Shown here in pieces: positions 1 through 16,695 of a stretch of 57,561 bases of DNA. The notes beneath the pieces are model-generated. The model was not told where the DNA came from. It made no database searches and saw nothing but the letters and a program-made list of their open reading frames with translations. Position 1 is the stretch's first letter, and each line of letters starts with the position of its first letter. The DNA is from Guillardia theta CCMP2712 (lineage: Eukaryota; Protista; Cryptophyta), in assembly GCF_000315625.1 (NCBI RefSeq), contig NW_005434443.1, positions 1-57,561 on the forward strand, read 5' to 3'. The position numbers were made by a program, and so were the translations under genes.

Positions 1-1031
1 TCGCTGAACAGAGTCAGGTGTACTCCCTCCATCGCTTCGCTCTCTCGGAAAGCTCGAAATGCTGTATCATTCGCCTCTGGGCAGCTCGAGGAGACGATGC
101 ACTCCACCTCCCTCTGTCTCCAGATGACGTTGGCCCCTACAGCGATGAAGCCTTTCTGACCTAAGCCTTTGTGGACTTGCTGTCCTGGCGCCCCAGCGAC
201 CAGCATGCCTGCCAGCGGCTGGAGTTGGACCGCTGCAAGGGACTGGCGCAGCAGCTGATAGCGATAGACGGCAGCTATCTCAGCCGTTGTCATGCCGCCC
301 AAGGTTAGCAGGTGAGTCAGCTCTGCCAAGCTGCCCCCTTTGCCCCAGGGTCCTCTCTTGGCTCGAATCTTGAAAGATCGATCGTGCACGATGCTCACAT
401 GTACAGCTGTGAACTTGCGACCATCGATCGCGAAGTCCTCTCTTCCCTGCCAGAGCTTCTCCGCTTGTGCATTGCGGAGGAAGGAAACAGTCACCGGGAT
501 CTCCTCAGCACTCGCTATCTCGGGTCTATACGGAGCCTTCCACATGATTGCTTTACTCTCTTGCACTGAGTCTACGATCAGTCCGATCTCTTCAAATTTC
601 TTCTTCAGCTTTTCTTCATGGTTGACATACACCGAGGAGATGCCCAGGAGAGTCATGGAGATGAAGGAAGTCACCTCGTTGCCTGCTGAGGCGGTGTATG
701 TCTCGACCTTCTCCTTCTTGGCTTCTTCAATCTGCTGCATAAACCACTCTCTGGATGCGTCACTCCATCCAGTCATCGCTTCTTGCAGAAACTCACGTCG
801 TGCCTGCTGACATGTCGAGCGGATGGCTTCTGCGATAGCGTCGGGGGTGCATCCCTCCACAGCCTTGCAAGCCTGGGCTGTCCTGCTGTTCGGATAACGC
901 TTCGCGAAGCTCTTCACCCTCTCGACGAGATCAGCTTCGAGGACAGAGGCATCCACAAGTCCGCTCTGCGTGTATTGGCATGATCTCCGATACAGCAGGT
1001 TGCGAACATTTTCATCATACTGAAGAACCAT
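1..1031 (-). CDS. ORF1 protein of family B element (partial; continues beyond the window start)
   Basis: Minus-strand frame from ATG at 1031: MVLQYDENVRNL...QQIEEAKKEKVETYTASAGNEVTSFISMTLLG... It is in frame across the segment deleted in the 12309-14123 copy. Confidence 0.7.
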   Translation of the reverse strand, partial: MVLQYDENVRNLLYRRSCQYTQSGLVDASVLEADLVERVKSFAKRYPNSRTAQACKAVEGCTPDAIAEAIRSTCQQARREFLQEAMTGWSDASREWFMQQIEEAKKEKVETYTASAGNEVTSFISMTLLGISSVYVNHEEKLKKKFEEIGLIVDSVQESKAIMWKAPYRPEIASAEEIPVTVSFLRNAQAEKLWQGREDFAIDGRKFTAVHVSIVHDRSFKIRAKRGPWGKGGSLAELTHLLTLGGMTTAEIAAVYRYQLLRQSLAAVQLQPLAGMLVAGAPGQQVHKGLGQKGFIAVGANVIWRQREVECIVSSSCPEANDTAFRAFRESEAMEGVHLTLFS

Positions 1032-1121
1032 ACTTAGAAAGCTATTTGAAGTATACAAACCTCTTGCTTGCAGCTTCCTTGGCGCCCTGGCGGCTTCCCC
1101 TACACCTGACGAGGAGCCATG

Positions 1122-1184
1122 CTGCCGAAAATAACGGCGCCTCTGCCGAAAATAACGGCGCCTCTGCCGAAAATAACGGCGCCT
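1122..1184. repeat. 21-bp tandem repeat x3 (CTGCCGAAAATAACGGCGCCT) at the element 5' end
   Basis: Read directly from the sequence. Confidence 0.95.
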
Positions 1185-1209
1185 CCTAAACCCTAAACCC
1201 TAAACCCTA
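1185..1209. repeat. Telomeric repeat tract (CCCTAAA)~3.5
   Basis: CCTAAACCCTAAACCCTAAACCCTA; Arabidopsis-type TTTAGGG on the minus strand. Confidence 0.97.
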
Positions 1210-1232
1210 GTAGTAGTAGTCGATTTTTATTA
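1208..1232 (-). other. Element 3' end: AATAAA followed by an (ACT)4 tail joined to AGGGTTTAGGG
   Basis: Minus strand reads TAATAAAAATCG-ACTACTACTACT-AGGGTTTAGGG. Confidence 0.8.
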
Positions 1233-1776
1233 GAATGCTAGAATAGTCGCATCGGGTACCTTCCCGGTCTAGTCTAGTCTAAATGGGTTCTCACGCTTGG
1301 CAGAGCGGCCCTTCTTGGATGGCCCGTTGTGGCATCCAGGGTTCTATCGCTGTTCCGCTTTTTCTGTTGTTTCCATAGTCCTCCGTTCCGAGCCGCCGGT
1401 GCCGTATCTCCTCCGGGCCCGGGTTGACGGTTTCAGTGTAACCGTCCACCTTTCTATTTTTTGCGCTAAGTCCATGTCCCTTCCCTGCCTGCCGCTTGTG
1501 AAGCTTCCCCATCGGTCTGTCCTCGTTGCCCTTTCCCCTGCCGTCATCCATCTGTCTCCTGTGTCCTTGCCCCTTCCTTGCCATGTTGGTTGTTTTTCGC
1601 CTGTGAGGCTTCCCCTTCGGTCTGTCCGTTGACCGTTGCCCTTTCGTCTCCCATCTGTCTTCTGTGTCCTTGCCCCTTCCCTGCCATGCTGATCCTGGTT
1701 GCTTGCTTTTGAGGCTTCCCTTGTGATCTGTCCTCGTTGATCTTTACCCAGTCATCTTCCAACCATCTTATATCCT

Positions 1777-4545
1777 TCATGCTTGTTCTCTGTTAGTCGT
1801 GTCTCCTCGTCTCCTTGAGGTCCACAGCATGTGTTGCACTTCGAGCAGCTGGATGACTATCTTGGTCATGGCTCTGTCAATCATATCCTCGTCCATGAGC
1901 AAGTTCCGGAAATTTGTGGTCCATTCCCGCTCCATAATACTGCCTCTCACTCCTGCAATGAACGTGGCTTGTAAGACCTCTGTGTTGTCGCTCCTGCTTG
2001 TCATCTCTGCCCGCAGTGCTGCATATTTCTGTTCTTTCTCCTGAAACTTTGCTTTCAGGTTTGCCAGACTGCTTCCCTCGCCCGTGAACTCTGAAGTTCT
2101 CGCTATCTCCACCAGCACAATGCGATTGCTCCCTCTGAAGTAGCAGAGCCCATCTGGTATGAGATTGCCGTGCTCTGGTGCAGTCAGTCCTAGCCCTGTC
2201 ATAGAGTTGATTGGCGTTTGCCACCAACTCTCCTGTTCAACACTTTTCTTCTTCCAGCTTTCTGTCAGGCATCCCTTGATTGTCTCCATTACTCTGTTGT
2301 GTGCCAACGCGATCATGAGCTCAAATTCTTTGCAGGCTAGCTGAACATGCACCCAGCTTTCTTCCCTGCCTTCGCACCATGGGCAACAGGGGGATGTCGT
2401 CTTCTTCCACTGGAACAGCTTTTTCCTCGTTGGTGCTGACCAGGTAATAGCTTGGATAGCTGTCCGAAGTACTGATCCGCGACACCTCTGTAAGGCTCGA
2501 CCTAGGATCCTTCTGCCCACTTGTGGTTCCAGGAGAAAGGTTTCCGTCAAGGTGAGGGGGGCTTCTTTCCTCCTCAGTTCCAGTTGTTCTTCTCTGATTA
2601 TCTTATCCCATATTTTCAATCGATCCATCCCCGGCTTGAAGTTCTCTTCGTCTGCAATGCAGAATCCCAAGTCGCTGTCGATGAGGGCCCGTTCCCACGT
2701 GGAGGAGAAGGAGGATTTTCCCTTGCGGGCTTCTTCTGCAGCTTCTTGCACTACGGTGTGGTCTGCGATCATAGAGAGGTTGATCTCAATGCCCTCCCGC
2801 TGAAATTTGCTCAGGCATTCCTGCAGTCTTCCTGCCAAGTCGTATACGAGCTCGTCTTCATACTGCATGGTAGACCATCTGAGGGTGTCCGTAAGAAAGC
2901 GATGCATTCGGGTTGATTTAAAGAGGACGAAGATTTTCCTGATTGTTTTCTGTTTGCCTCTTTGTTCCCAAATCGCTTGTAGGAGTATGCAGAGTGCGAT
3001 GGTATGTGCTCTGATGACGCTGCATTTTCCGTGTATCTTGATCGCTCCGCGTTCCTGCTCTCCTTCCTTGTCTTGCGTGCTGTATCCTATCGACATTGAT
3101 CGACCCTTCCTGTTTCGTGATATGTCGCCGTGGATTGCGGACCACACTTGGTTCCTGTTCTTCTCCTGTTTGGCCGAGGCTTGATAGTTTTCGTTTTGCT
3201 TCCTTCGGTATTCTTGTAGCTCCTCCTGTTCAGGGATCAGGTGTACTGTGAGTTGGACAATTATTCTCTCTTGTTCCGACTCCTTGCAGTAGACAATCAG
3301 GTCGTCTTGTGACTTCCTGAGGCTCCGATCGCCCGTCCTCCAGAAATTTGCAGCGTAGCATATTTCTGATCCTTTAGGTACCTTACCGACTAGCATGAAG
3401 CCGTCAGGGATTTCTTTCCTGAAGCAAGTTTGGTTCCATCCGATCAAGATTGTTCCAGACTCGCATGCGGCGTAGCTGAGGTATTGTTCCTGTTGGTCGA
3501 TCCATATTATTTCACGTCGAACCTCGTCTTCCTGCAAGCTATCGGTTGCGGCCTGGATTGTCGGGTGATAGAGGGTGGGCCAGTTGCTGAACTGTTTTGT
3601 TTCAGCGAGCATCCCCAAGTGTTCTAGAAATTCGTACGACAGCGGAAGGCCTTGTTGTCTATCTCGAATTTCAGCCATGGCGGTGGTTAGATGTTCCCAC
3701 CAAGCTTGCGAGTTGAGTGAGCTGTTATGTGTTTTGCTGATATACTTAGCAATTTGCAGTAGGATCTCTGTCTTCTCTGGGTTCTTGGCTCCATCGTCAT
3801 CTTCTTTCCTCGCAAATGGCGCCGAGCGAAGGGAAGGTTCAGCTTCTTTGATGTCTTGTTCTTGGCCCGTGTGACTTCTGGGCCGGTCCATGATTGCTAT
3901 GTCGCCCTTGATTTTGAAACTTTCCTTACCTTTTAGGATTAGGTGTTCCTGTTGATCCAGATTGCCTAGTAGTTTAGCCATGAGGGATCTTGTGTTTGCA
4001 TGAGCTGGGTGTGGCCTTCTCTCTTCTGCTGCTTCCCGATGCTTTTTGGATGTCTCCTCCCGGTCCTCCTCTGATTGCGGGTGTGACTTTCGTTTTCGGG
4101 TTGTAGCACTATCCTGCGAGGCAACCTCTCGTCTTTTCCTCTTTGTTCCTGATGCTCTGTTGACGCTGCTTACCCAGATGACATTTTCTTGTAGCAGTTG
4201 CATTACGATCCCCTCCGCCTCCTCGCGTTGCCTTGGGAAAGGCCAGAGCTTCCTTGGCAAATGCAGTTCTTCGTCAGCGATAGGTCGTATATTTCGTAGC
4301 AAGGAGAATTGGAGTTTCGGGAGTTGCCTCCATAAGGCTTGGAAGGTCGTCCAGCCTTGTGGTCTGTCGCTGTCGTTCAAGTTTGCCACCATATCCTCCA
4401 TCCTATGAAGGAGGGAGATGCTTCCAGGTAGGTGACCTGCTTCTATGTGGGCCCAGCTGATCCTCGTGTTTAGTTTTTCCGCCAGCCAGACTGCTAAAGC
4501 TTCGGGTCCCCGCACCACATCACGCTCCATAGTTCGAAAATTCAT
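1777..4545 (-). CDS. Retroelement ORF3 (C-terminal half of pol): degenerate RNase H-like region, CCHC zinc finger, restriction-like PD-(D/E)xK endonuclease
   Basis: CPWCEGREESWVHVQLAC (C-x2-C-x8-H-x4-C), then AHN, PDG, VLVEIA and KEQKY, which is the R2/NeSL-type RLE motif order. Confidence 0.88.
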   Translation of the reverse strand: MNFRTMERDVVRGPEALAVWLAEKLNTRISWAHIEAGHLPGSISLLHRMEDMVANLNDSDRPQGWTTFQALWRQLPKLQFSLLRNIRPIADEELHLPRKLWPFPRQREEAEGIVMQLLQENVIWVSSVNRASGTKRKRREVASQDSATTRKRKSHPQSEEDREETSKKHREAAEERRPHPAHANTRSLMAKLLGNLDQQEHLILKGKESFKIKGDIAIMDRPRSHTGQEQDIKEAEPSLRSAPFARKEDDDGAKNPEKTEILLQIAKYISKTHNSSLNSQAWWEHLTTAMAEIRDRQQGLPLSYEFLEHLGMLAETKQFSNWPTLYHPTIQAATDSLQEDEVRREIIWIDQQEQYLSYAACESGTILIGWNQTCFRKEIPDGFMLVGKVPKGSEICYAANFWRTGDRSLRKSQDDLIVYCKESEQERIIVQLTVHLIPEQEELQEYRRKQNENYQASAKQEKNRNQVWSAIHGDISRNRKGRSMSIGYSTQDKEGEQERGAIKIHGKCSVIRAHTIALCILLQAIWEQRGKQKTIRKIFVLFKSTRMHRFLTDTLRWSTMQYEDELVYDLAGRLQECLSKFQREGIEINLSMIADHTVVQEAAEEARKGKSSFSSTWERALIDSDLGFCIADEENFKPGMDRLKIWDKIIREEQLELRRKEAPLTLTETFLLEPQVGRRILGRALQRCRGSVLRTAIQAITWSAPTRKKLFQWKKTTSPCCPWCEGREESWVHVQLACKEFELMIALAHNRVMETIKGCLTESWKKKSVEQESWWQTPINSMTGLGLTAPEHGNLIPDGLCYFRGSNRIVLVEIARTSEFTGEGSSLANLKAKFQEKEQKYAALRAEMTSRSDNTEVLQATFIAGVRGSIMEREWTTNFRNLLMDEDMIDRAMTKIVIQLLEVQHMLWTSRRRGDTTNREQA

Positions 4546-7500
4546 TTCTCTTTGGAGCTCGAGGATTGTTTGGCATCCCCATTCCGCAAACCAGTTTTTC
4601 TCGTTCGATGTATCGTAGCGCTGCTCGCCCTAGGATTGGGGCAGGATGAGGGACCTGCAGCCCTCCATTCTCTGTTGGCAGGTAGAATATACCATTCCCT
4701 GTACTTTTGCTCAGTCCTAACGCTTGTTTAAAAGCTCTGATCCACAGTTGATCTAATTCTTGTAGATCTCGCCAAGTCCATCCAGTCATGACTGCGGAGT
4801 AGCGAAAGACGTTGAGAATTCCAACTTTCACCAGGTAGAATTTTTGCGCAGGAGTATAACTCGACGAGCTGATGTTTTTGATCAGTTCTTTGGTTTTTTC
4901 AAAGACGTATGCTCGTTCTCCCCAAGTGAAAGGGCAGCCCTTTATTCTTCGTCTTTCTTCCTTCCACAGAGAGATGCGATAGCCGAGATATTTGAACGGT
5001 TTAGTAGCCGGTAGGGCTTCGACAGGTTCCCCCATGACCGTTATTTTGTTCGCACCAGGAACCTCTCCCTTGCGAGCATAGTCGAAGCTGGTTATCTCTG
5101 ATTTCTTATTGTTGATTTGCAGTCCTGACCATTTGCAGAAGGAATCCACCACTGCTACCAATTCTCGCATTTCTTTCATCGTGTGTGCGATGAGTACCAT
5201 GTCATCGGCGAAGGACAGGTTGTTTGTTGTTCCTGTGCTGCACTTGTCCAATTGCCTAGAGAGGATGCATAGCACCAAGTTGGCCAGTTGTGGGCTACTT
5301 GCTCCACCTTGTGGCAGCCCGATTATTAGAGGTATTTTCCCTGTGTTGAACTCGTTTGTTTGTATTTGCAGTTCGACTCCACTGTTGCAGGCTATCACAG
5401 TTCTAATGTCCTCAGGATGGAAGCCTAGGCTGTTCATTGCCTGCTCGACCACCTCGATTGCCACATTGTTAAAGAAGTTCGCAAAGTCCAGGTACAAGAG
5501 AATGAGGGACGTTTTGGCCTCTTCTGCTTCTTCTACGATCGAGATCAGTCGATGAGCCTGCCGACTTGTGCTTCTGCCTGGACGGAACCCCTCCTGGAAG
5601 TTTGTGAGGACGTTGTTTGCTTCTACTGTCTTACTCAGACGATGCGCCAGGATTGCCTGAACCAGCCGAGTAAGCGTTGACATGACGCATATAGGCCGCA
5701 TGTTTTCGAGAATGTGACAGAATTGATTTTTTGGCAGGAGGCGTACTCTCGCTGTCTTGTTGAGAACCTCAGCTTTGCCTTCTAGGGCTGCATTGACTAA
5801 CTTGCCAACTTCCTCTCGGCATGCTGGTGGCAGCGCCCGCAGCACTTCGTTCGAAATGAGGTCAAGTCCTGCAGCCTTTCGTCTCGGCGCCGAGGCGAGC
5901 CAGACATCAATCTCTCCCGGTGCCAGGGGTCTGGTGATTTCCTGTTGTTGTCTCCTTGAAAGCTGCACCCCCTCAGGCGGTGTGATCCGTCTTGGGGCCA
6001 CGGTTGTGAACGACTTACATTTTGTGCAGTACGGGGTCATCCCTCCCCCTCCGATGGTCTCGTCGCTTGAGTCAGCCAAGGGGAGCATACATCCGATGTT
6101 TGAGCATTTTGAGCAGGTCCCTTGTTTCGTGCATGCGTTGACGCTGAAGAAGAATCGTGTATGGTCCGCGTCCTCAAGCTCTCTAACCTTCTGCATTGGG
6201 AGATGATCCGTGAGATCACGGTATCCTGCTATCTCCCATGTTGTTTTATCCGATTCTTCTAGTGCTACAATTGCTTTCGTGATTGTGTTTGCAGGTAGCA
6301 GTGATAGAAAGAGCCAGTCATCTGTCCCCTCTCGCTCGATCCCAATCATCAGTTGCTGGTTTGCACTCCAAAATGCTCTAACACCCCTCGTGTCTTCGCT
6401 AGATAAGGTTGCTTCGATTTGGTTGATGAGCTCGTCGGCATTGTCGACTATCTTGCCGAGCAGTCGAAGAGCCAAGCCTTTGTGGCAACGAAGGGAGTTA
6501 GGGTGTTTTTTCTTGATGTCTTGACTTATCATCGGTTCTTTGGGAGTGAAATCATTCTTGCGTCCCATTGCATTCTGGGATTCACGGCTGCCTACCGTGC
6601 CAAGCCGTGTTTGCTGTTGTTGGCAGATCTCTTGGAAAACTTCGTTGTTTTGTTCTTCACATATCGTTCTGAACCTCTCGATCTTAGTTCGCAATTCTCG
6701 TTGTAATGTAGCTTCCGTAGGTACTCCAGTCGCTGGTCTTTGCTGTGATGCTTCCCTAAGTTTAGTCCGCAAGTTGCGGATCGATCTCTTCAAATCCATT
6801 TGTTCTTTGTTCGCGTGTCGCCTCCCTCCCTTTCTGATTTTTACCTCCTTTAGTGGTAGAGAGTTGGCGAGCATCTCACAAATGTTACATTCTTGCGCCT
6901 TAGCTCGCATGTCTCGTATGTTTGCATCTAGTTGTTGCGCCCATTCGATCTTCTTCTCCTCCCACGTATCGCGATCCAGCACCCATCTGCTTTTAGGGGT
7001 TTCCCCCCTCTTCTGTCGTGTATTCATCTGATGCACTTCCACTCGTGGGATTAGCTGCGTCTCCTCGGATGTGAACTTGGTGTGCACTTGCACCACCAGG
7101 GCTCTGTGATCAACTGCTCCCCCTATCACACAGCCGTCGACCGTCCACGATTGAAGGGAGATGTTGGGGAAGTTGTCCTCATTAGTTGGGGGGTGGATAG
7201 CGAGGACTGCGTCGAGTTTGGCTTCTATCAATTCTTGTTTGTACCATGTTGAGAAGGTAAATGTTGTCCCAGTCTCGCTGATCTGTTCATATGAGAGTGT
7301 ACGGTGTGCGGAAAGGTCTGCCAGGAATTTCTCGAATCTCTCATCTGCTTTTGCGGTGATAGATGAGGGGGAATATCCTCTCCGCATTGGTGTTGTTGTG
7401 TTGGTTCTTGCTGCATTAAAGTCTCCGGCTATGATGTGTGTCTCTCTCGTTCCCAGAGCGAGGTGTAGCAGCTCTGCCCACAGTTCCCCTTGCTCTCGAA

Positions 7501-9229
7501 TCGCATTTTCCGCCGGTACCTGATGGAGGTTCGTGACTACGAAAGAATTTTTCCCTGTTCCGACTTTGATCGAAAACACTCGGTTTCGATATTTCTTTTC
7601 TTTGTTGCACGCCTGAGCGGCATGGGAAGGGGAAGGCGAGAGGGAAGCGTGGACCAGCGTTACCAACCTCAGGTCTCCTTTCCCCTTCTTGGCATTGATC
7701 TTCGCAGGCCCCAGGAAGATTCTGTAGCAGGCCCAGTTCTCCTTGATCATCTTCCTTAATTTGTTCTCGTCGCGGGCCGAGACCCTTACCTCTTGTAGTA
7801 GCACAACCCCAGGTTGGAAGGACTGGATTAAGTATGCGAGGATGTGCTTGAGAACAAAGTGATTGCAACCATTCACATTTTGTGAGATGAGGAAACCTGG
7901 GTCTGAGCTTTTTCGATGCATCTGCGCCCAATCATTGCCCCTTTGCTCCTCCTGCCTTTTCCCCCTCCGCTCCTTCCCTCTCTGGGAGGTTTTCTCTCCT
8001 GAGTGTGCATTCTCCTCCATTTCCTCACCAAAAAGTCTTGGTTGGGGCTTCGTGGTGGTCGCCTGCCGCTGGATTGCGATCGGCTGTACCTTCTCCTCAG
8101 GCTTTGCCGTCGAGGTCATCGGCCGCTGGATTGCGTTTGGCTGTACCTCCTCCTCAAGCTTTGTCGTCGAGGTCATCAGCCGCTGGATTGCGTTTGGCTG
8201 TACCTCCTCCTCAAGCTTTGTCGTCGAGGTCATCAGCCGCTGGATTGCGTTCGGCTGTACCTCCTCCTCCGGCTTTGTCGTCGATTTCAAGCTCTCTTGC
8301 ACCCTCGCCTCCTTCGGCAGAGATCGCAGAATTACCTGGGCCGTTTCCTCCATCTTCTCCAGATGGGTGAGAGCTGCAATCAGTTGTGTTCTGGTTTGCA
8401 TCAGCCATTCTTGCGGAAGTCTTAGTCTTGTCCTCGTTTCCATCGTTGCTAGCCAGTCTTGATTTGTCTCGCAGAGCAGTAGGGTGTGAAGGATAGCAAA
8501 CACTCCGCAGTTGAAGTTATCTTCCTGTTGGAAGGCTGAGCACCACTGTATCTGCCATGGGGCATTGGTCTGATCGTCAAAGATGTGTTCGATCACTCCG
8601 ATTGTCAGCTCAGCCATTTCTCTTGCTCCTTTTGCGTGCTCCCCCGTTGTTACAAGATTCCTCGCTCCCTCGATCCCTCGTGGGTCCCTCGTTGTGCTCG
8701 TTCTGTCCTCGCAGAGGGGGTCCAAGATGTACGCGCATCGCCGATCATATCTTAATGCAATTAGAATCCAGTGGTTGCTGTGGATGATAGTTGGGAACAG
8801 GAAGGTGTGTTGCTCATCTCTCAAGCTGCTGAGGTGAAATCTGTTCCCGACTCTCAAGCGGGACGCCTCGTCTCGCAGACTGGATATTACCCTTGGCAAG
8901 AAGATGATGTTCCGCGTTTGCTGGTCCTCACGAGCTCTCCCTTTGCGTACCATATGTATTGCTCTTCCTCCTTGAAGAGCCTTGCTCATCTCATTGAGAG
9001 TAACTTCGATCATGTTCTCGCATAAAAATCCGCTTACTCCTCGATTGTTCAGGGCAGTGATGCCAAATTCCTTGTCGCCTCGTTTGTCTGACCATGGGAT
9101 CTCCTCGATCCAATCAAAAAAATACAATGTTCTATCTACATGTTGCGTTTCCTTTGAAACCGTTTCCCTCTCCCCCCCTTGCCTACTCCCGGCACTCCCC
9201 CCTTCCTCCTCCCTTCCTCCTCCTGTCAT
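4520..9229 (-). CDS. Retroelement ORF2: Ulp1/C48-like cysteine protease, APE endonuclease and reverse transcriptase
   Basis: Protease: NHWILI, ILDPL, QQEDNFNCGVF (~8470-9100). APE: SQNVNG, LLQEV, AGDFNA, KLDAV, VDH (~7090-7900). RT: KAAGLDLI, LLPK, RPICV, QEGFRPGRS, LDFANFF, LPQGGASSP, FADD, KYLG, ENGGL (~4650-5900). Confidence 0.95.
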   Translation of the reverse strand: MTGGGREEEGGSAGSRQGGERETVSKETQHVDRTLYFFDWIEEIPWSDKRGDKEFGITALNNRGVSGFLCENMIEVTLNEMSKALQGGRAIHMVRKGRAREDQQTRNIIFLPRVISSLRDEASRLRVGNRFHLSSLRDEQHTFLFPTIIHSNHWILIALRYDRRCAYILDPLCEDRTSTTRDPRGIEGARNLVTTGEHAKGAREMAELTIGVIEHIFDDQTNAPWQIQWCSAFQQEDNFNCGVFAILHTLLLCETNQDWLATMETRTRLRLPQEWLMQTRTQLIAALTHLEKMEETAQVILRSLPKEARVQESLKSTTKPEEEVQPNAIQRLMTSTTKLEEEVQPNAIQRLMTSTTKLEEEVQPNAIQRPMTSTAKPEEKVQPIAIQRQATTTKPQPRLFGEEMEENAHSGEKTSQRGKERRGKRQEEQRGNDWAQMHRKSSDPGFLISQNVNGCNHFVLKHILAYLIQSFQPGVVLLQEVRVSARDENKLRKMIKENWACYRIFLGPAKINAKKGKGDLRLVTLVHASLSPSPSHAAQACNKEKKYRNRVFSIKVGTGKNSFVVTNLHQVPAENAIREQGELWAELLHLALGTRETHIIAGDFNAARTNTTTPMRRGYSPSSITAKADERFEKFLADLSAHRTLSYEQISETGTTFTFSTWYKQELIEAKLDAVLAIHPPTNEDNFPNISLQSWTVDGCVIGGAVDHRALVVQVHTKFTSEETQLIPRVEVHQMNTRQKRGETPKSRWVLDRDTWEEKKIEWAQQLDANIRDMRAKAQECNICEMLANSLPLKEVKIRKGGRRHANKEQMDLKRSIRNLRTKLREASQQRPATGVPTEATLQRELRTKIERFRTICEEQNNEVFQEICQQQQTRLGTVGSRESQNAMGRKNDFTPKEPMISQDIKKKHPNSLRCHKGLALRLLGKIVDNADELINQIEATLSSEDTRGVRAFWSANQQLMIGIEREGTDDWLFLSLLPANTITKAIVALEESDKTTWEIAGYRDLTDHLPMQKVRELEDADHTRFFFSVNACTKQGTCSKCSNIGCMLPLADSSDETIGGGGMTPYCTKCKSFTTVAPRRITPPEGVQLSRRQQQEITRPLAPGEIDVWLASAPRRKAAGLDLISNEVLRALPPACREEVGKLVNAALEGKAEVLNKTARVRLLPKNQFCHILENMRPICVMSTLTRLVQAILAHRLSKTVEANNVLTNFQEGFRPGRSTSRQAHRLISIVEEAEEAKTSLILLYLDFANFFNNVAIEVVEQAMNSLGFHPEDIRTVIACNSGVELQIQTNEFNTGKIPLIIGLPQGGASSPQLANLVLCILSRQLDKCSTGTTNNLSFADDMVLIAHTMKEMRELVAVVDSFCKWSGLQINNKKSEITSFDYARKGEVPGANKITVMGEPVEALPATKPFKYLGYRISLWKEERRRIKGCPFTWGERAYVFEKTKELIKNISSSSYTPAQKFYLVKVGILNVFRYSAVMTGWTWRDLQELDQLWIRAFKQALGLSKSTGNGIFYLPTENGGLQVPHPAPILGRAALRYIEREKLVCGMGMPNNPRAPKRNEFSNYGA
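8060..8290 (-). repeat. 60-bp coding tandem repeat x~4 (TTKLEEEVQPNAIQRLMTST) in the protease-APE linker
   Basis: Visible in both DNA and protein. Confidence 0.9.
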
Positions 9230-9238
9230 GATTCGGTT

Positions 9239-11344
9239 TTAGAGCTGAGAGGCAACCTCTCCCTCTTGGTTGCCACTCTCCTCTTCCATCTCCAGTCCCA
9301 TCTCCTCCTCTGCCTTGCTCAAGAGAAACTCAATTTCGTCTCCCGAGCCTACGCTGCCTTGGTAGGTTAGCGTGGCTGTGAGAACTAATTTATTCAGGGC
9401 AAGAAACAACAAGTCAGTTCGAAATTCTTTTTGTTGTTTCTCCCCTCCTCTCCCTGTTGCTTTTGCAAAGGCTCCCTGGCGTCTTCTTGATGCTACCGTC
9501 TCCCACGCATGCTGCTCGCTTACTCTTGCAATCTTACTCTTCAAAACTTGCATGTCGTCGTCCTGGGTTGCCGAGGATGATTCCGCCCATTCCTTCAGCG
9601 TCGGAAAACATGCATTTCCAGGAGATGACAAGCTGTCGTACAGGCCGACGATGGCTCCATCGAGCCTGAGTTTGCAAGCTTGGTTTTCTGCACTCTGTCC
9701 CTGGTTGACAGTCTCCTCCAGAACTTTGTAGATGTCTTCGAGGACCACGTTTGCCTCTGGTTCTGGGATGTTGATCTCATTCTCGATCCGTTCGAGATCT
9801 ACCTGTGCCCACAGAGGCTCCGTGGGGGATTCTGTAGCGATCGCTTCCCAAAGGTTGGCACTGCCTGGCTCTAGGAGAAGAAGTTTCCCCGCCCTGTCCC
9901 ATGGCGCAAAGGACCTGAGTATGTCGATCGCCGTTTCTTTTTCTGAGAAGCTGAGCACTAGATGTTCACCGTTCCAGCTGTTGGTCTCGACATCTTCCTT
10001 CGAGGAGATCTTGACGATGTGCTCAGCCGCTGACTCCTTCCAGCTCGCCACGATCCGTCTCAGTCCTCGAATTGTCATGCCCATAGAGAGATCCTCCCCG
10101 TCGCAGATCTGTTCAGCTTCCTCTCTGGTGAACCTTCCCTTCTGTGCTTTACTCTTGACCAGCACCTCATAGGTCACTCTTCGTGGTACTGCTCCTAGCG
10201 CGTCGGGCAAGAAGTCCAACCTAATTGGATGCTGTCTCGTTACCCTGGTGATTGCACTAACCTGAGTAGTGAACCATTTGAGGATCTTTTCATCTTCCGA
10301 CATCAGTCCGAGGTGTATGCCTCCTCCATTCCTGTCGTCTCCCTCAAACATCCGTAGCGTGGTGCTCAGGACGTCCGTCGAAGAGCATCTCGCAATCCAA
10401 TCGATCTCTCTTCCTTGTCGTATCTCGTCCACTCCGGCTGCTGCGAAAGTGCGTTTGTTGGGCTGACCTTGAGGTCTCCTCTTCGTCTTGACCTCTAGCT
10501 GCATGCCCGCTTCCGGCTGCACCTCCAACACAGCTATTCCTTGTTGCAGCAGGTGTTGACGATAGATCTCCGTAATCCCAGCTGAGTTCATGCCATTCAT
10601 CTTGAGGAGGTGAGAGAACTCAGCTAGGGCCCCCGCCTTGCCAGAGTGCTTATCCTTCTGTGGCCTTATCTTGAAGGAGCAAGGATGCTTCGAATGCGCG
10701 TTCACCGCGCGGATCATCTTTCCGTCGATCCTGAAGTTCGTCTGTCCTTTCCACAGCAGTTCTGCTGCGTCGTTCAATTGGAGTGTTGCCACGACTGGGA
10801 TTTCATCCACTGTCGGAATCAAATCTTTCTTGATCGGGGCTCTCCACGAGATGCATTTCTTGCCCTGCTCCTCGTGCACCAAGAGTCCTTGATCCTTCAA
10901 CTTCTCACACAGTACCTCAACTTGTTTTATGTACTGGGTAGGAACTCCGAGGATAGCCATGGTAATCAGTTTACCACTCTCGGGGGACGCTCCTGAAGCA
11001 TCGATGCAGGCACTCTTGTCTAGTACCTCCTGTTTGTCTGCGTTCCATGCAGAGACATACCACGACTGTCCTTCTTCCCCCCATTCTTTGATGGCATCCT
11101 CCTGGCTCCTGACTTCAGCATGTTTGCAGGTCTGTCGAATGGCTTCGGCTAAGGCGTTCATCGAGACTTCCTTGGACTGCAAGGCTCTGCCTGTCCTGCT
11201 CTGAGGGTACTGCCTGACGAAGTGTTCCAATCTTCGGATCAGCTCTCCTAGCGAAGGTGCTGAAGGTGTCGTGTCCTTGTTTAGGAACTGGGAAACTCGG
11301 ACACGAGCAATCTGTTTCCTTTCCTCTTTGGATAGATACCACAT
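9239..11344 (-). CDS. Retroelement ORF1 (about 700 aa, no recognisable domain)
   Basis: Long ORF that stops 9 nt before the ORF2 ATG. First ATG is at 11344 (the track starts at a TTG, 11350). Homologous to the family B and C ORFs. Confidence 0.85.
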   Translation of the reverse strand: MWYLSKEERKQIARVRVSQFLNKDTTPSAPSLGELIRRLEHFVRQYPQSRTGRALQSKEVSMNALAEAIRQTCKHAEVRSQEDAIKEWGEEGQSWYVSAWNADKQEVLDKSACIDASGASPESGKLITMAILGVPTQYIKQVEVLCEKLKDQGLLVHEEQGKKCISWRAPIKKDLIPTVDEIPVVATLQLNDAAELLWKGQTNFRIDGKMIRAVNAHSKHPCSFKIRPQKDKHSGKAGALAEFSHLLKMNGMNSAGITEIYRQHLLQQGIAVLEVQPEAGMQLEVKTKRRPQGQPNKRTFAAAGVDEIRQGREIDWIARCSSTDVLSTTLRMFEGDDRNGGGIHLGLMSEDEKILKWFTTQVSAITRVTRQHPIRLDFLPDALGAVPRRVTYEVLVKSKAQKGRFTREEAEQICDGEDLSMGMTIRGLRRIVASWKESAAEHIVKISSKEDVETNSWNGEHLVLSFSEKETAIDILRSFAPWDRAGKLLLLEPGSANLWEAIATESPTEPLWAQVDLERIENEINIPEPEANVVLEDIYKVLEETVNQGQSAENQACKLRLDGAIVGLYDSLSSPGNACFPTLKEWAESSSATQDDDMQVLKSKIARVSEQHAWETVASRRRQGAFAKATGRGGEKQQKEFRTDLLFLALNKLVLTATLTYQGSVGSGDEIEFLLSKAEEEMGLEMEEESGNQEGEVASQL

Positions 11345-11430
11345 GATCAAACAACCGTTTCTGCACAGAAAAATGTCCTGTTCAGCACCCTAGCTCGCAG
11401 GGATCCCCTCAAACTGCAGGGGAGGAGAGC

Positions 11431-12271
11431 ATGTCTGTTACTCCAGCGGCCTGTCTGTTACTCCAGCGGCCTGTCTGTTACTCCAGCGGCCTGTCTGTTA
11501 CTCCAGCGGCCTGTCTGTTACTCCAGCGGCCTGTCTGTTACTCCAGCGGCCTGTCTGTTACTCCAGCGGCCTGTCTGTTACTCCAGCGGCCTGTCTGTTA
11601 CTCCAGCGGCCTGTCTGTTACTCCAGCGGCCTGTCTGTTACTCCAGCGGCCTGTCTGTTACTCCAGCGGCCTGTCTGTTACTCCAGCGGCCTGTCTGTTA
11701 CTCCAGCGGCCTGTCTGTTACTCCAGCGGCCTGTCTGTTACTCCAGCGGCCTGTCTGTTACTCCAGCGGCCTGTCTGTTACTCCAGCGGCCTGTCTGTTA
11801 CTCCAGCGGCCTGTCTGTTACTCCAGCGGCCTGTCTGTTACTCCAGCGGCCTGTCTGTTACTCCAGCGGCCTGTCTGTTACTCCAGCGGCCTGTCTGTTA
11901 CTCCAGCGGCCTGTCTGTTACTCCAGCGGCCTGTCTGTTACTCCAGCGGCCTGTCTGTTACTCCAGCGGCCTGTCTGTTACTCCAGCGGCCTGTCTGTTA
12001 CTCCAGCGGCCTGTCTGTTACTCCAGCGGCCTGTCTGTTACTCCAGCGGCCTGTCTGTTACTCCAGCGGCCTGTCTGTTACTCCAGCGGCCTGTCTGTTA
12101 CTCCAGCGGCCTGTCTGTTACTCCAGCGGCCTGTCTGTTACTCCAGCGGCCTGTCTGTTACTCCAGCGGCCTGTCTGTTACTCCAGCGGCCTGTCTGTTA
12201 CTCCAGCGGCCTGTCTGTTACTCCAGCGGCCTGTCTGTTACTCCAGCGGCCTGCTCTGTTACTCCAGCGGC
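11431..12271. repeat. 20-bp tandem array (CTGTCTGTTACTCCAGCGGC) x41 plus one 21-bp variant; 5' end of element A
   Basis: Near-perfect repeats from 11431 to 12250 and a variant unit at 12251-12271. No spacers. Confidence 0.98.
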
Positions 12272-12273
12272 CT

Positions 12274-12308
12274 CCTAAACCCTAAACCCTAAACCCTAAA
12301 CCCTAAAC
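12274..12308. repeat. Telomeric repeat tract (CCCTAAA)5
   Basis: Read directly. Confidence 0.97.
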
Positions 12309-14123
12309 TCCAGGCTCCCCGGAGAGTAGAACGTGTCGTGGAGGTTGCCAACGGCCTTGTCCAGGACCAGCTTGATCGGCTCGCTCGTCCCTGCCTCGTT
12401 CAAAGAAGCTGCATCTTCGATGACTGCTGACAGCTCGCTGACGAGCTGCATGTCCTCTTGGCTTGACGGAGATGCTGCCTCCATTGTGATCCTCTCCAGG
12501 TCTGTAAACTCCAGCCACTCTCCCTCGCTCTCCTCCTGTCGCTGCGCTGCGTCGCTGGTGCCCCGCTGACCAGCCGCCTCAGAGTCAGGCTCCTTGTCGA
12601 AGCCGACTGCTTCGAGCTTGGTGGCTGCGCCTTCGAGATAGAAGGGCAGCTCCTTCATCATGCGTCGAGCATCCTCCGTGGAGCCGAGGAGGATGCATAG
12701 CTTAGACCCGTTCCAGGACTTGGTGTTCAAATCCTCCTCCATGTCGATGCCTTCAACTTTGATCTCGAGCCTGTTAGCGATCTCCAACAAGACTCTCTTG
12801 ACTCTTGCGATGGACGTGTTGCCGCCGTTGCACAGCCCCTCCATCTCCTTCCTCGTGAAGCGACCAGATGCCGCCGTCGACTTGATGATGATCTTGATCT
12901 CCTTGCCGTCCTTGCCGCCTGCCTTCTTCTGCATCCTTGATGCCTTCTTCAACTTATTTCTGGACACAAAGCGATCAGCTGTCAACTCGACTGCGAGCGC
13001 CTCTCTGATCTTCGGGTCCTCGCTGAACAGAGTCAGGTGTACTCCCTCCATCGCTTCGCTCTCTCGGAAAGCTCGAAATGCTGTATCATTCGCCTCTGGG
13101 CAGCTCGAGGAGACGATCCACTCCACCTCCCTCTGTCTCCAGATGACGTTGGCCCCTACAGCGATGAAGCCTTTCTGACCTAAGCCTTTGTGGACTTGCT
13201 GTCCTGGCGCCCCAGCGACCAGCATGCCTGCCAGCGGCTGGAGCTGTACCGCTGCAAGGGACTGGCGCAGCAGCTGATAGCGATAGACGGCAGCTATCTC
13301 AGCCGTTGTCATGCCGCCCAAGGTTAGCAGGTGAGTCAGCTCTGCCAAGCTGCCCCCTTTGCCCCAGGGTCCTCTCTTGGCTCGAATCTTGAAAGATCGA
13401 TCGTGCACGATGCTCACATGTACAGCTGTGAACTTGCGACCATCAATCGCGAAGTCCTCTCTTCCCTGCCAGAGCTTCTCCGCTTGTGCATTGCGGAGGA
13501 AGGAAACAGTCACCGGGATCTCCTCAGCACTCGCTATCTCGGGTCTATACGGAGCCTTCCACATGATTGCTTTACTCTCTTGCACTGAGTCTACGATCAG
13601 TCCGATCTCTTCGAATTTCTTCTTCAGCTTTTCTTCATGGTTGACATACACCGAGGAGATGCCCAGGAGAGTCATGGAGATGAAGGAAGTCACCTCGTTG
13701 CCTGCTGAGGCGGTGTATGTCTCGACCTTCTCCTTCTTGCTTGCAAAAGCTCACGTCGTGCCTGCTGACATGTCGAGCGGATGGCTTCTGCGATAGCGTC
13801 GGGGGTGCATCCCTCCACAGCCTTGCAAGCCTGGGCTGTCCTGCTGTTCGGATGACGCTTCGCGAAGCTCTTCACCCTCTCGACGAGATCAGCTTCGAGG
13901 ACAGAGGCATCCACAAGTCCGCTCTGCGTGTATTGGCATGATCTCCGATACAGCAGGTTGCGAACATTTTCATCATACTGAAGAACCATACTTAGAAAGC
14001 TATTTGAAGTATACAAACCTCTCGCTTGCAGCTTCCTTGGCGCCCTGGCAGCTTCCCCTACACCACGCGTGCAGCCATGGTGCCTGAAATAACCGGCGCT
14101 CGTGCCTGAAATAACCGGCGCTC
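12309..14123 (-). mobile_element. Family B element, 3'-truncated within ORF1; ORF1 is frameshifted by a 61-bp deletion
   Basis: ORFs 13690-14016 and 12296-13693 are two pieces of one ORF1. Bases equivalent to 721-781 are missing at 13739/13740. The 5' end has a 22-bp repeat x2 (14080-14123). The ORF runs directly into telomeric repeats. Confidence 0.88.
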
Positions 14124-14151
14124 TAAACCCTAAACCCTAAACCCTAAACCC
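14123..14151. repeat. Telomeric repeat tract (CCCTAAA)4
   Basis: Read directly. Confidence 0.97.
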
Positions 14152-14565
14152 AATCTGCTGCATAAACCACTCTCTGGATGCGTCACTCCATCCAATCATT
14201 GCTTCTTGTAGAAGCTCACGTCGTGCCTGCTGACATGTCGAGCGGATGGCTTCTGCGATAGCGTCGGGGGTGCATCCCTCCACAGCCTTGCAAGCCTGGG
14301 CTGTCCTGCTGTTCGGATGACGCTTCGCGAAGCTCTTCACCCTCTCGACGAGATCAGCTTCGAGGACAGAGGCATCCACAAGTCCGCTCTGCGTGTATTG
14401 GCATGATCTCCGATACAGCAGGTTGCGAACATTTTCATCATACTGAAGAACCATACTTAGAAAGCTATTTGAAGTATACAAACCTCTCGCTTGCAGCTTC
14501 CTTGGCGCCCTGGCGGCTTCCCCTACACCTGGCAAGGAGCCATGCTGCCGAAAATAACCGGCGCT
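14152..14565 (-). mobile_element. Family B element, 5' ~410 bp only (3'-truncated)
   Basis: Nearly identical to ~729-1140, has a single 5' repeat unit, and is bounded by telomeric tracts. Confidence 0.88.
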
Positions 14566-14619
14566 CCTAAACCCTAAACCCTAAACCCTAAAACCCTAAA
14601 CCCTAAACCCTAAACCCTA
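14566..14619. repeat. Telomeric repeat tract, ~7.5 units including one CCCTAAAA variant
   Basis: Read directly. Confidence 0.97.
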
Positions 14620-14945
14620 GACACTCCTGCTCGAGCGCATTAGTCGCTGCTGCCCTTGGAGAGAAGGCGCTACCCCTCCTCGCTGCCTTGTTCCCTTGCA
14701 CCCGTGTCCAGCGCTGCTCGCCGAGGTACGCTCTGAGCTTTTCTTTCAACATGTTTCGCTTCGATCCCAGCGTCGGCGTGGCTGCCCAAGCTCCGAGCGT
14801 CATGAACTCCACGTTGCCCGGCGAGCAGAAGGTGTCATGCAGCTTGCCAACACTCTTGTCTAGCTCCAGAGAGATCGGCTTGCCAGCTAGCAGCTCCTCC
14901 TCTGATGTCTCCAAGAGCATCGTCGAGAGGTCGAGCAAGACCTGA
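14620..14945 (-). mobile_element. Internal ORF1 fragment of a third related family (C), truncated at both ends
   Basis: ISLELDKSVGKLHDTFCSPGNVEFMTLGAWA aligns with family B IKLVLDKAVGNLHDTFYSPGSLEF and family A LRLDGAIVGLYDSLSSPGNACFPTLKEWA. Confidence 0.82.
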
Positions 14946-14992
14946 CCTAAACCCTAAACCCTAAACCCTAAACCCTAAACCCTAAACCCTAA
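14946..14992. repeat. Innermost telomeric repeat tract (CCCTAAA)~6.5; boundary to unique sequence
   Basis: Read directly. No further telomeric tracts were seen downstream. Confidence 0.97.
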
Positions 14993-16695
14993 GGAGAGGC
15001 GAGTACCCCCGTGACTACTGCTGTGGGCACGTGTGCGGTATGAGTCTTTGGACTTGAGGGCGCCGGCGGGCAACAGGCCAGTCTTTGGGGGGACCATGCT
15101 GATTCTTTCTATTTCGGTGTGAAGATTTTCAATGAAGGTGAAGGAGCTGGAGGTAGAAGAAACATCATGAAGTACTGTAGAAGTACCATCAAGTAAGAAT
15201 TCACAACAAAGAATGGGAAAACAACTTTATCACACTAATGATTTTTCCGATTAAAAAGAGCTTGAGGCATGCTTTAAGTACACAAGATATGAGTAGCGCT
15301 GCCTCTCGCAGACTGTTCCTGGAACCTTGCTTCTTAGTCCAAGCTCTAGGTAAAAGTTCACTTCATTCCCTTTCTTCCTTACTGGACTACAGAAGATTAC
15401 CTGGCATGTCCATGCTGTCGGTTCGAAGAGTTCGCACAAGTAAGAACCGAGGAGAAGTTAAAACTGATCAAACCAGTGGAGGTATGACTTGTTTCAACCC
15501 AAATTGAATATCGACTTGCGGTCAGAGTACATGAGTAAAGGATTTAGTGTCGAGGTATGAGAGGCGAGGTAGAGGTGCAAGGTAGAGAGGTTGAGGTGTA
15601 GGATAAGAGAGGTAGAAGAGTAAGAGATAAGCGTTAGAGGTGCGATGTAGGGCAGAAGAGGAATTTGTGTAGGGTATGAGAGAGGATGTTTTAGTGACGC
15701 CTTCGATGTAACAGGAGCAGCTACAGTTTGTTGTGCATGAGCAGGCAAGATGGTGTCCACGTTCAACATTCGTGCTCGAGGAGGTCAGCGCACATCTCGT
15801 GCGTTTCGTGCTGCTTGCATTGAAAAACTTTTAGGAAGCCTGGCGAGAGTTTGACGCGTCCAGTAATGTCTCGTTGCATGTGACAGGTGCTTTGACCTGT
15901 GTAATGGGACGAGATCAAGACTTGATCAAGACTTGATGCAGCATACAACGCCGAGAGTGATACAGCGTACAATGCTGACAGTGACGGCATGGACGACAAT
16001 TGCCCGTCAGTAGATGTCAATGAGGACAAAGCAAGCATTCATCTTCTTAGGAAGCACAAGAAACTGTGGTGTAGAGAGAAAGGCGTAATTGATTGCTTGC
16101 TCGTTGAGCAGGAGCAAAGTGACTCTGCAAGGTGACTTGCTGGCACAACTTGTGTATTTTGACTTGATATGCAGAGGTTGGAATAGCGAGGAGGACGCGC
16201 GATCTGAGGAAAGCAGTTGGGAACAAAGGAGCACGAGCAGCGAGATTGCCCATGGCAGTCGGCATGATAGTGATGAGATTGCCTATGACAGTCGGCATGA
16301 CAAGGATGCTGCGGATGGAGTGATTGAAAACATTGACGATGAGAGCCTGGGATTGATTATCGACGGTCTACAGGTACAACCTAACGGTCATGTTGTACAA
16401 CCTAACGGTCATGTTGCTTCTCAATTGACGGGTGTAGGTTGTGGACTCTGATCCCGAAGCCTCTTGCGTGTCAGAGGACCAGAGCGACGCCTTGCTTGCT
16501 GTAAGGGGGTCAGGGCCTGAAGAACAAGAAGAGAGCATCAAGCAAAGTTGATTCCCGTATTCATACAACCAGACAGAAACTTAAAAACTGCAAACTCGCG
16601 GACAAGAATTTTACGTATTTTCTTTGGGATCCTAGGGACAAGACAGCTACTGAAGGATTGAAAGCTCACTAGACAGCTCCTGGAGGCTTGGAAAC

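Follow-up and report, generated by a model that had tools for sequence, protein, structure and literature searches.

3'-truncated, telomere-capped retroelement copies at a scaffold end of Guillardia theta are consistent with terminal loss, telomerase healing and re-insertion

Introduction

At one scaffold end of Guillardia theta CCMP2712, three retroelement copies without their 3' ends run into telomere repeats. How were these ends lost, and does the succession of the copies keep a record of what happened at the chromosome end? An earlier note on this DNA had proposed repeated terminal loss, telomerase healing and new insertion, with the array read as a chronological record. Here we analysed the window, i.e. 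the entire 57,561-bp scaffold, and surveyed the junctions between elements and telomere repeats in the window and in 12 other G. theta scaffold pieces, which together hold a minority of the genome's copies. Protein matches identified the DNA as that of G. theta CCMP2712. In the literature searched, a limited collection, no description of G. theta telomeric retroelements was found.

Results

Layout of the array

Telomere-type heptamer tracts are present in the window in their C-rich form on the + strand (21 matches versus 0 expected), thus placing the chromosome terminus to the left of the window. All the elements of the window are sense on the G-rich (minus) strand and are listed, with the tracts that separate them, in Table 1. 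Telomere tracts between elements are all short in the window and the 12 scaffold pieces, ranging from 22 to 95 bp with a single one of 512 bp, regardless of the upstream sequence.

Table 1. Retroelements and telomere tracts at the left end of the window, from the terminus side inwards.
Position	Strand	Feature
1–1184	-	Outermost T copy, with three 21-nt 5' units; runs off the scaffold end toward the chromosome end
1185–1209	-	Telomere tract, 3.6 units; separates the outermost T copy from the LINE 3' end
1210–12273	-	Full-length autonomous LINE
12274–12308	-	Telomere tract capping A, 5 units; precedes the LINE 5' monomer array
12309–14122	-	Copy A of element T, intact 5' end, ends at T 1843
14123–14151	-	Telomere tract between B and A, 4.1 units
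14152–14565	-	Copy B of element T, intact 5' end, ends at T 408
14566–14619	-	Telomere tract between C and B, 7.6 units, with one 8-nt variant unit
14620–14945	-	Copy C, internal piece (326 bp) of the ORF1 of a sister ORF1-only family
14946–14992	-	Innermost telomere tract, 6.7 units; adjoins unique subtelomeric DNA at 14993

The assembly is a draft of 2012, in which the array occupies the end of a scaffold, in a repeat-rich region, and scaffolds stop inside arrays. Such a location, together with junctions known from the assembly alone, is also what reads misjoined through short repeat tracts could produce. We regard an artefact of this kind as very improbable. Indeed, every read type used in building such an assembly is longer than the tracts concerned (29–54 bp), so that the joints between internal sequence and repeats should exist in single reads, and eight other scaffold pieces carry joints of the same kind between element and telomere, located at different positions.

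An autonomous LINE with a fixed mode of insertion

The full-length LINE carries at its 5' end 42 monomers of 20 bp (11432–12273), and encodes on the minus strand ORF1 (9239–11350) and ORF2 (4520–9229, continuing in 1777–4545). Pfam matches in 4520–9229 (minus strand) identified an APE endonuclease (Exo_endo_phos, E = 8e-08) and a reverse transcriptase, RT (RVT_1, E = 6.5e-35). A weak Ulp1 match in the LINE (E = 0.034) may point to a Dualen-like clade instead of the R1 clade with SART/TRAS. A reading of the array as 5'-truncated Athena-like copies on the + strand was rejected, since it is the minus strand that carries the long ORFs, APE and RT as well as the ORF1 homology.

At its 3' end, the window LINE has a (TAC)n stretch that joins the telomere tract in the canonical register. 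Intact 3' ends beside perfect tracts were all found in one register (10/10), (TAA)n or (TAC)n being followed by TAGGG. In the window and at 12 loci, the elements have telomere repeats on both sides, are sense on the G-rich strand and point to scaffold ends. Insertion being always sense on the G-rich strand, the 3' ends face the terminus. One internal rearranged locus with inverted pieces (L004) is the exception to the single orientation.

The array is built by telomere-repeat-targeted non-LTR elements, namely an APE- and RT-encoding LINE plus ORF1-only partners that share the LINE 3' box. With APE and RT, one orientation and a fixed 3' register, the system has a SART/TRAS-like way of working, a likeness of function.

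Three copies without 3' ends

Element T is an ORF1-only partner element of 2.66 kb, of which A and B are members; a full-length copy with the canonical 3' end (L001:9881–12542, 2662 bp) was used as reference. No relatives were found when metagenomes were scanned with the T ORF1. As originally described, A, B and C lack their 3' ends and run into telomere repeats (CTGGAG/TTTAGGG at 12308, CAGATTG at 14151 and GTGTCT/AGGG at 14619), each breaking at a different point, and the surviving pieces measure 1.8, 0.41 and 0.33 kb. Comparison with full-length T confirmed that the parent continues with ATTGAAG past the breakpoint of B.

Copies A (1814 bp) and B (414 bp) also keep their 5' ends, as the earlier note had it. 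These coincide with the 5' end of the copy at 1–1184 and show, directly after the tract, two units of 22 nt in A, which represent a different 5' subfamily, and one 21-nt unit in B, against the three units of the outermost copy. Since A, B and the outermost copy differ in 5' subfamily, they are separate insertions. According to the alignment, A stops inside ORF1 at approximately residue 582 of the LINE ORF1, and it bears a frameshifting 61-bp deletion between 13739 and 13740. A spliced intron at this gap was rejected, given the absence of GT..AG ends, the flanking CAAG repeat and the shifted frame. Copy C, with both ends missing, shows 95% identity to a copy of the sister family (L007:6814–9760) and corresponds to family-3 positions ≈1771–2096.

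A possible overlap of 1–3 nt had been noted for all three junctions. This holds for A, which shares 3 nt (GTT) with the telomere repeat, and for B, which shares 1 nt (G); in C, the 4 nt before the tract differ from the sole parent-like copy available.

BLAST analysis against the window did not retrieve any remainder of the lost 3' part of A, B or C, either on the far side of the adjacent elements or elsewhere in the window, and nested insertion was thus rejected. The expected rise of divergence toward the inside was found in direction, with private changes numbering 1 in 1074 bp in the outer copy, 5 in 1367 bp in A and 2 in 358 bp in B; however, these changes are too few and the trend is not significant.

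Junctions across the scaffold pieces

The survey yielded 11 distinct junctions between internal sequence and telomere repeats (3 in the window and 8 further), nearly as many as the intact 3' ends. Breakpoints are located at positions 408, 544, 1843, 2365, 2408, 2433, 2569 and 2601 of T, and at positions 1259, 1846 and ≈2096 of the sister family. Ten of these 11 occur once in the 13 scaffold pieces, a partial sample in which no second copy of the A, B or C breakpoint was found; A and B, in particular, do not recur in the 12 other pieces, as fixed derivatives carried to many loci would. The same breakpoint and cap at several loci is a pattern seen only for a 265-bp truncated derivative, present twice in L010 (9481–9745 and 12236–12501), the two units being 99% alike and both breaking at T 2569, with different flanks. 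Given this derivative, not every truncated copy need have been truncated in place.

Parent and repeat share 1–3 nt at 10 of the 11 junctions (simulated chance 0.447 per junction; P ≈ 0.002). Seeds end in G or AG at 6 junctions and in T at 5, the latter including the GTT of A and the junction of C. Such seeds would also be expected if the copies were born truncated, that is, if the endonuclease nicked the C-rich strand and RT started inside the T RNA at a 1–3 nt pairing, with no end loss at all. A precedent is offered by SART1 of Bombyx mori, for which internal RT initiation at telomere-like seeds can yield 3'-shortened copies (PMC7265360). This origin would agree with the junctions of A, C and three others, which are compatible with the canonical register, and with the position of the breakpoints, 5 of the 9 in the set then known lying within the final 20% of the element (P ≈ 0.02), although such an excess near the 3' end fits equally erosion from the 3' side and internal priming near the 3' UTR. 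Against it, the truncated junctions start the telomere tract in several registers, and at least 6/11, including B, are incompatible with the register that is invariant in the 10/10 intact ends. In addition, the sample holds about as many truncated as intact ends, a proportion that is high for a priming error. We consider it unlikely that the copies were born in their present form. The occurrence of two nick registers, as an explanation for all the junctions, was rejected because the L012 junction lies outside both.

Two further T copies have lost their 3' part but bear no telomere cap, and 5'-truncated LINE sequence directly adjoins them, in L003 (T 1–1560 to LINE 10442–11064, with a 3-nt microhomology) and in L011 (T 5–1805 to the ORF2 tail of another LINE). 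These direct joints show that 3' loss can arise by routes without a telomere cap. They would be accounted for if the next element inserted farther out and its cDNA joined inside an older copy, by microhomology or template switch, thus deleting the 3' part of that copy, in which case the telomere letters at the capped junctions would represent a telomeric 5' leader of the incoming RNA. Two T copies in L010, whose upstream tracts are identical down to a shared 5-nt interruption, could be taken as evidence of a leader travelling with the element. However, that tract accompanies mosaic copies, which point to recombination among arrays, and recombination explains it as well. A transcription start in the upstream tract would have to be assumed, a leader of 4–8 repeats would be required every time and, as the cap may precede the 5' end of another family, several families would need leaders. 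Loss coupled to the insertion of the next element is, in our estimate, quite unlikely.

The mosaic T copies and the 265-bp derivative also bear on whether A, B or C might have been truncated and capped elsewhere and then copied here, by retrotransposition of a read-through RNA with telomere repeats at its end, by break-induced replication or by recombination between chromosome ends, in which case the array would not record local events. The breakpoints of A, B and C being without a second copy in the scaffold pieces, themselves a minority of the genome's copies, and nearly all the others having been seen once, an origin by copying seems improbable to us, and it would still need an original healing event.

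Discussion

Our preferred explanation of the array, to which we assign a probability of roughly 0.6, is that terminal loss was followed by telomerase healing and then by new insertion. The orientation of the elements, the short seeds and the registers unlike those of normal insertion all fit erosion or breakage and healing by telomerase; the terminal loss and the telomerase-made caps are what we infer from the sequence. According to this model, the outer telomere tract would be lost by erosion or by a break, and degradation would enter the 3' part of the outermost element. Telomerase would then extend the exposed G-strand end from a 1–3 nt seed, thus leading to a new tract, and a new element would enter this tract a few repeats away from its base. 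Repeated three times, this cycle would have left C, then B, then A, each capped by 29–54 bp of repeats. Since the tracts between elements are short, the model requires in addition that elements insert near the base of a tract or into telomeres that are very short, or else that the tracts shrink later. No truncated element beneath a long terminal tract, the intermediate expected at a terminus, was seen in the scaffold pieces. The idea of a chronological record may thus be kept for the truncated series C, B, A, but not for the whole array, whose order does not follow, since any internal tract is accessible to an element that relies on an endonuclease.

Arrays that record their own history, as proposed for G. 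theta, occur in Drosophila, where HeT-A, TART and TAHRE form head-to-tail terminal arrays and the outermost element is shortened by erosion until another is added. Unlike in G. theta, telomerase and repeat caps are absent from these arrays, the elements attach to the chromosome tip itself with the 3' end pointing inward, and erosion removes 5' ends. Gladyshev and Arkhipova are reported to have described, in 2007, how Athena and other endonuclease-deficient Penelope-like elements alternate with telomerase-added repeats, their truncated ends being capped. Athena-like elements prime at the G-overhang, have an RT of another family and lose their 5' ends, whereas in G. theta there is an APE domain, the elements lie the opposite way and the 3' ends are those lost.

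SART1 and TRAS1 of Bombyx mori are, like the G. theta LINE, APE-type LINEs with a defined nick in the telomere repeat and a fixed orientation and register, and SART inserts into the G-rich strand, as the G. theta elements do (PMC7265360). However, they carry a poly(A) tail in place of (TAA)n or (TAC)n, no ORF1-only partner of theirs is known, whereas G. theta has such partners, and the telomerase of Bombyx is very weak. Arrays of 3'-truncated telomere-capped copies are not described in PMC7265360.

In Magnaporthe oryzae, MoTeR1 and MoTeR2 resemble the G. theta system in several respects, with telomere-repeat arrays of one orientation and short interstitial tracts, an autonomous element plus a partner with a common 3' end, and arrays reshaped by recombination and break-induced replication (PMC7367193). 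The process of truncation, healing and re-insertion was observed experimentally, and 19/24 de novo telomeres grew from seeds of 1–4 nt (Rahnama et al. 2020, PMC7367193). In G. theta, likewise, the junctions are direct and on the terminus side of the copies, the seeds fall within 1–4 nt and the register is not fixed by the endonuclease. The two systems differ in that MoTeR elements face the other way and lose the 5' end, their endonuclease is restriction-like whereas the G. theta LINE has an APE (Pfam), and their host is a fungus with a 6-nt repeat instead of a heptamer. Moreover, the Magnaporthe events were seen happening, whereas those of G. theta are read from sequence.

It is a tentative, rather doubtful extension of the healing model that telomerase might also create new mobile elements. 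A telomere-ended truncated copy would stay transposable if the LINE needed only a telomere-ended RNA able to pair with the nicked C-strand. Erosion and healing would then keep yielding non-autonomous derivatives, of which the 265-bp unit may be an example, and the chromosome ends would be maintained by telomerase and retrotransposition acting together instead of by telomerase alone.

The principle of terminal-element truncation, de novo telomere addition and re-insertion is already established elsewhere, and what G. theta adds is therefore not a new mechanism but a new lineage, a new orientation and a well-defined test set. The junctions offer a direct way to approach the alignment register of the G. 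theta telomerase and bear on how strictly a site-specific LINE needs its own 3' end. If the healing model is true, the chromosome ends of this cryptophyte would hold a readable history of end loss and repair, and telomerase and telomere-targeted retrotransposons would take turns at the same ends in a telomerase-positive organism, as a mirror image of Magnaporthe.

Organisation of the array

Every long ORF of positions 1–15,000 lies on the minus, G-rich strand, and a search of the window for a two-unit telomere motif, allowing one mismatch, retrieved 21 matches against 0 expected. Since the repeat is in its C-rich form on the plus strand, the left end of the window faces the chromosome end; the window is a complete scaffold of the 2012 assembly of Guillardia theta CCMP2712. 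The full-length LINE begins with a 20-bp unit repeated 42 times (11432–12273), followed by an ORF1 of 703 aa and an ORF2 in which Pfam identifies an APE endonuclease and a reverse transcriptase; its 3′ tail, (TAC)n, runs directly into the adjoining telomere tract. On another scaffold piece (L008:8500–8565) an inverted LINE 3′ end, the reverse complement of the 3′ box plus tail, adjoins a G-strand telomere tract, an exception in orientation that suggests a past rearrangement.

Main features of the array and of related scaffold pieces
Feature	Position	Strand	Description
Telomere tract	1185–1209		C-rich form on plus strand, 7-nt repeat
Full-length LINE	1210–12273	-	ORFs, Pfam domains, 5′ units, 3′ tail
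Telomere tract	12274–12308		C-rich form on plus strand, 7-nt repeat
Copy A	12309–14122	-	T 5–1843; cut inside ORF1; 61-bp frameshifting deletion
Telomere tract	14123–14151		C-rich form on plus strand, 7-nt repeat
Copy B	14152–14565	-	T 5–408
Telomere tract	14566–14619		C-rich form on plus strand, 7-nt repeat
Copy C	14620–14945	-	ORF1 segment by translation; both ends absent
Telomere tract	14946–14992		C-rich form on plus strand, 7-nt repeat
265-bp derivative	L010:9481–9745; L010:12236–12501		same telomere-capped 3′ breakpoint
Capped T breakpoints	T 408, 544, 1843, 2365, 2408, 2433, 2569, 2601		
Capped sister-family breakpoints	1259, 1846, ~2096		

Copies A, B and the outer copy (1–1184) form a single family, unrelated to the LINE in DNA sequence; their ORF shares 31% identity with LINE ORF1. 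The complete element, T, was defined from a tandem array on another scaffold (L001:9881–12542, 2662 bp). It has one to many 5′ units of 21–22 nt, a 694-aa ORF1 with no RT, a 3′ UTR of 2.9 × 76-bp repeats and a 3′ box nearly identical to that of the LINE (1210–1260), the trinucleotide tails being (TAA)n in T and (TAC)n in the LINE. T is thus an ORF1-only partner of the LINE, and the common 3′ box fits its trans-mobilisation by the latter. The number of 5′ units varies from 1–3 in the window T copies to ~5 (L007:9814–9910), ~14 (L011:9586–9890) and the 42 of the LINE. One T copy (L012:10001–12485, protein P0001) bears a tandem duplication of ~100 codons inside ORF1, covering the region where copy A is cut. 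About 0.8 of the words of the T sequence (12309–14122) were also present in runs whose labels name several different organisms or metagenomes of lake, estuary and freshwater origin; such runs may represent studies of prey or of kleptoplasty, contamination or relatives.

The junctions, piece sizes and parent continuation described in the earlier note proved correct. All three copies lose their 3′ ends, and A and B indeed start at the T 5′ end, C lacking both ends. In its 5′ units and leader A represents one subfamily and B and the outer copy another, thus A, B and the outer copy are separate insertions and not duplicates. At 13739/13740 copy A lacks 61 bp that B and the outer copy keep, the gap being flanked by a CAAG direct repeat and splitting ORF1 into two frames (ORFs 13690–14016 and 12296–13693); its ends are not intron-like. 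Copy C shares 95% identity with a sister family, likewise ORF1-only, represented in L007, and its ORF1 segment spans the point where A stops.

Telomere junctions of truncated elements

Junctions were surveyed in the window and in 12 further pieces of the genome chosen via protein matches. Ten of these pieces extend to the end of their scaffold, and their elements point toward that end. Eleven distinct junctions of internal element sequence with an outer telomere tract were found, against 10 intact 3′ ends meeting perfect tracts, so that capped truncation is common and not peculiar to this scaffold. The breakpoints of A and B did not recur in the further pieces, and the missing 3′ parts were absent beyond the neighbouring elements in the window, nested insertion being thus disfavoured.

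When every junction was aligned to its parent sequence, an overlap of parent and repeat was found at 10 of the 11 (3 nt in A, 1 nt in B, 1–2 nt in eight others; P ~0.002, random joins simulated on the T sequence giving at least 1 nt in 44.7%). The proposed 1–3 nt overlap thus holds for A and B and fails for C, where 4 nt mismatch the single parent-like copy available. The 10 intact ends follow one register throughout, tail then TAGGG; the truncated junctions start their tracts in several, and at least 6 of the 11, including B, are incompatible with that canonical register.

Tracts started from short seeds, in registers unrelated to the element endonuclease, are what telomerase healing predicts. 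The reading we favour, with a probability of roughly 0.6, is terminal loss, telomerase healing and then new insertion. Because the 3′ ends face outward, any terminal loss would remove 3′ sequence; telomerase would then grow a new tract from a short seed, independently of the endonuclease register, and the next element would insert into the tract capping the previous truncated copy. Alternatively, the copies may never have had a 3′ part, reverse transcription having begun at internal telomere-like seeds, as it can in SART1 of Bombyx (PMC7265360). The registers of A and C are compatible with such an origin, those of most truncated junctions weigh against it, and we regard it as unlikely. Breakpoints are concentrated in the last fifth of the element (5 of the 9 known at the time of the test), an excess predicted alike by erosion from the 3′ side and by internal priming.

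Other routes to 3′ loss

Two T copies, cut at 1560 (L003) and 1805 (L011), are joined straight, without intervening telomere repeats, to 5′-truncated LINE sequence (L003:11249–11252, with a 3-nt ACA microhomology, and L011:11701). In these arrays, then, 3′ parts are also lost by deletion on insertion, by template switching or by microhomology-mediated repair; that such events made the capped copies, a putative telomeric leader on the incoming RNA mimicking the cap, is quite improbable, and no sign of such leaders was found. The 265-bp derivative (a partial T 5′ unit, an unrelated stretch of ~130 bp and the 3′ UTR of T as far as 2569, with cap) occurs twice in L010, 99% alike with different flanks. 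Truncated copies with a cap are thus able to spread, or to be copied, and each individual one might originate elsewhere, although we doubt this as the general origin. The same pair hints, tentatively, that healed copies might become new mobile derivatives, if an RNA ending in telomere repeats suffices for the LINE machinery. Two further L010 T copies (tied to L010:9745–9863 and L010:14057–14155) carry the same upstream tract, down to a shared 5-nt interruption, and are identical in their 5′ regions. In the ORF regions they belong to different clades; this mosaic structure points to recombination or gene conversion within arrays. Misassembly of the junctions is most unlikely, since the tracts span only 29–54 bp.

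Interstitial tracts measure 22–95 bp across the sample, plus one of 512 bp that separates the 3′ end of a LINE from the 5′ end of a T copy (L003:11876–12387). Given such short tracts, the healing model needs insertion near the tract base, very short telomeres or later tract shrinkage. At three different ends, tracts that are otherwise perfect contain a single 8-nt variant unit, with one extra T, 4–5 units in (window 14587–14594, L003 ~11900, L009 ~9490).

Order of events and known systems

Each truncated copy sits in the tract capping the previous one, giving the order C, B, A. The claim of a chronological record would hold for this series but not for the array in its entirety, as insertion driven by an endonuclease can take place in any of the internal tracts. 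Divergence rises inward as had been predicted, but not significantly, private changes being few (outer copy, 1 in 1074 bp; A, 5 in 1367 bp plus the deletion; B, 2 in 358 bp).

Bdelloid Athena elements reportedly alternate element addition with telomerase capping, a related process, and erosion records are already known from Drosophila arrays. In the MoTeR arrays of Magnaporthe oryzae the same sequence of events was watched directly, 19 of 24 new telomeres growing from 1–4 nt seeds (PMC7367193); those arrays lose the 5′ end, whereas the G. theta elements lose the 3′ end, and the events are here inferred from sequence. No account of telomeric retroelements of G. theta was found in the limited set of papers searched. 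The process is already known from Magnaporthe; what is new is the lineage, and outward 3′ ends with 3′ truncation as its signature. The 11 junctions form a set usable for testing the telomerase register.
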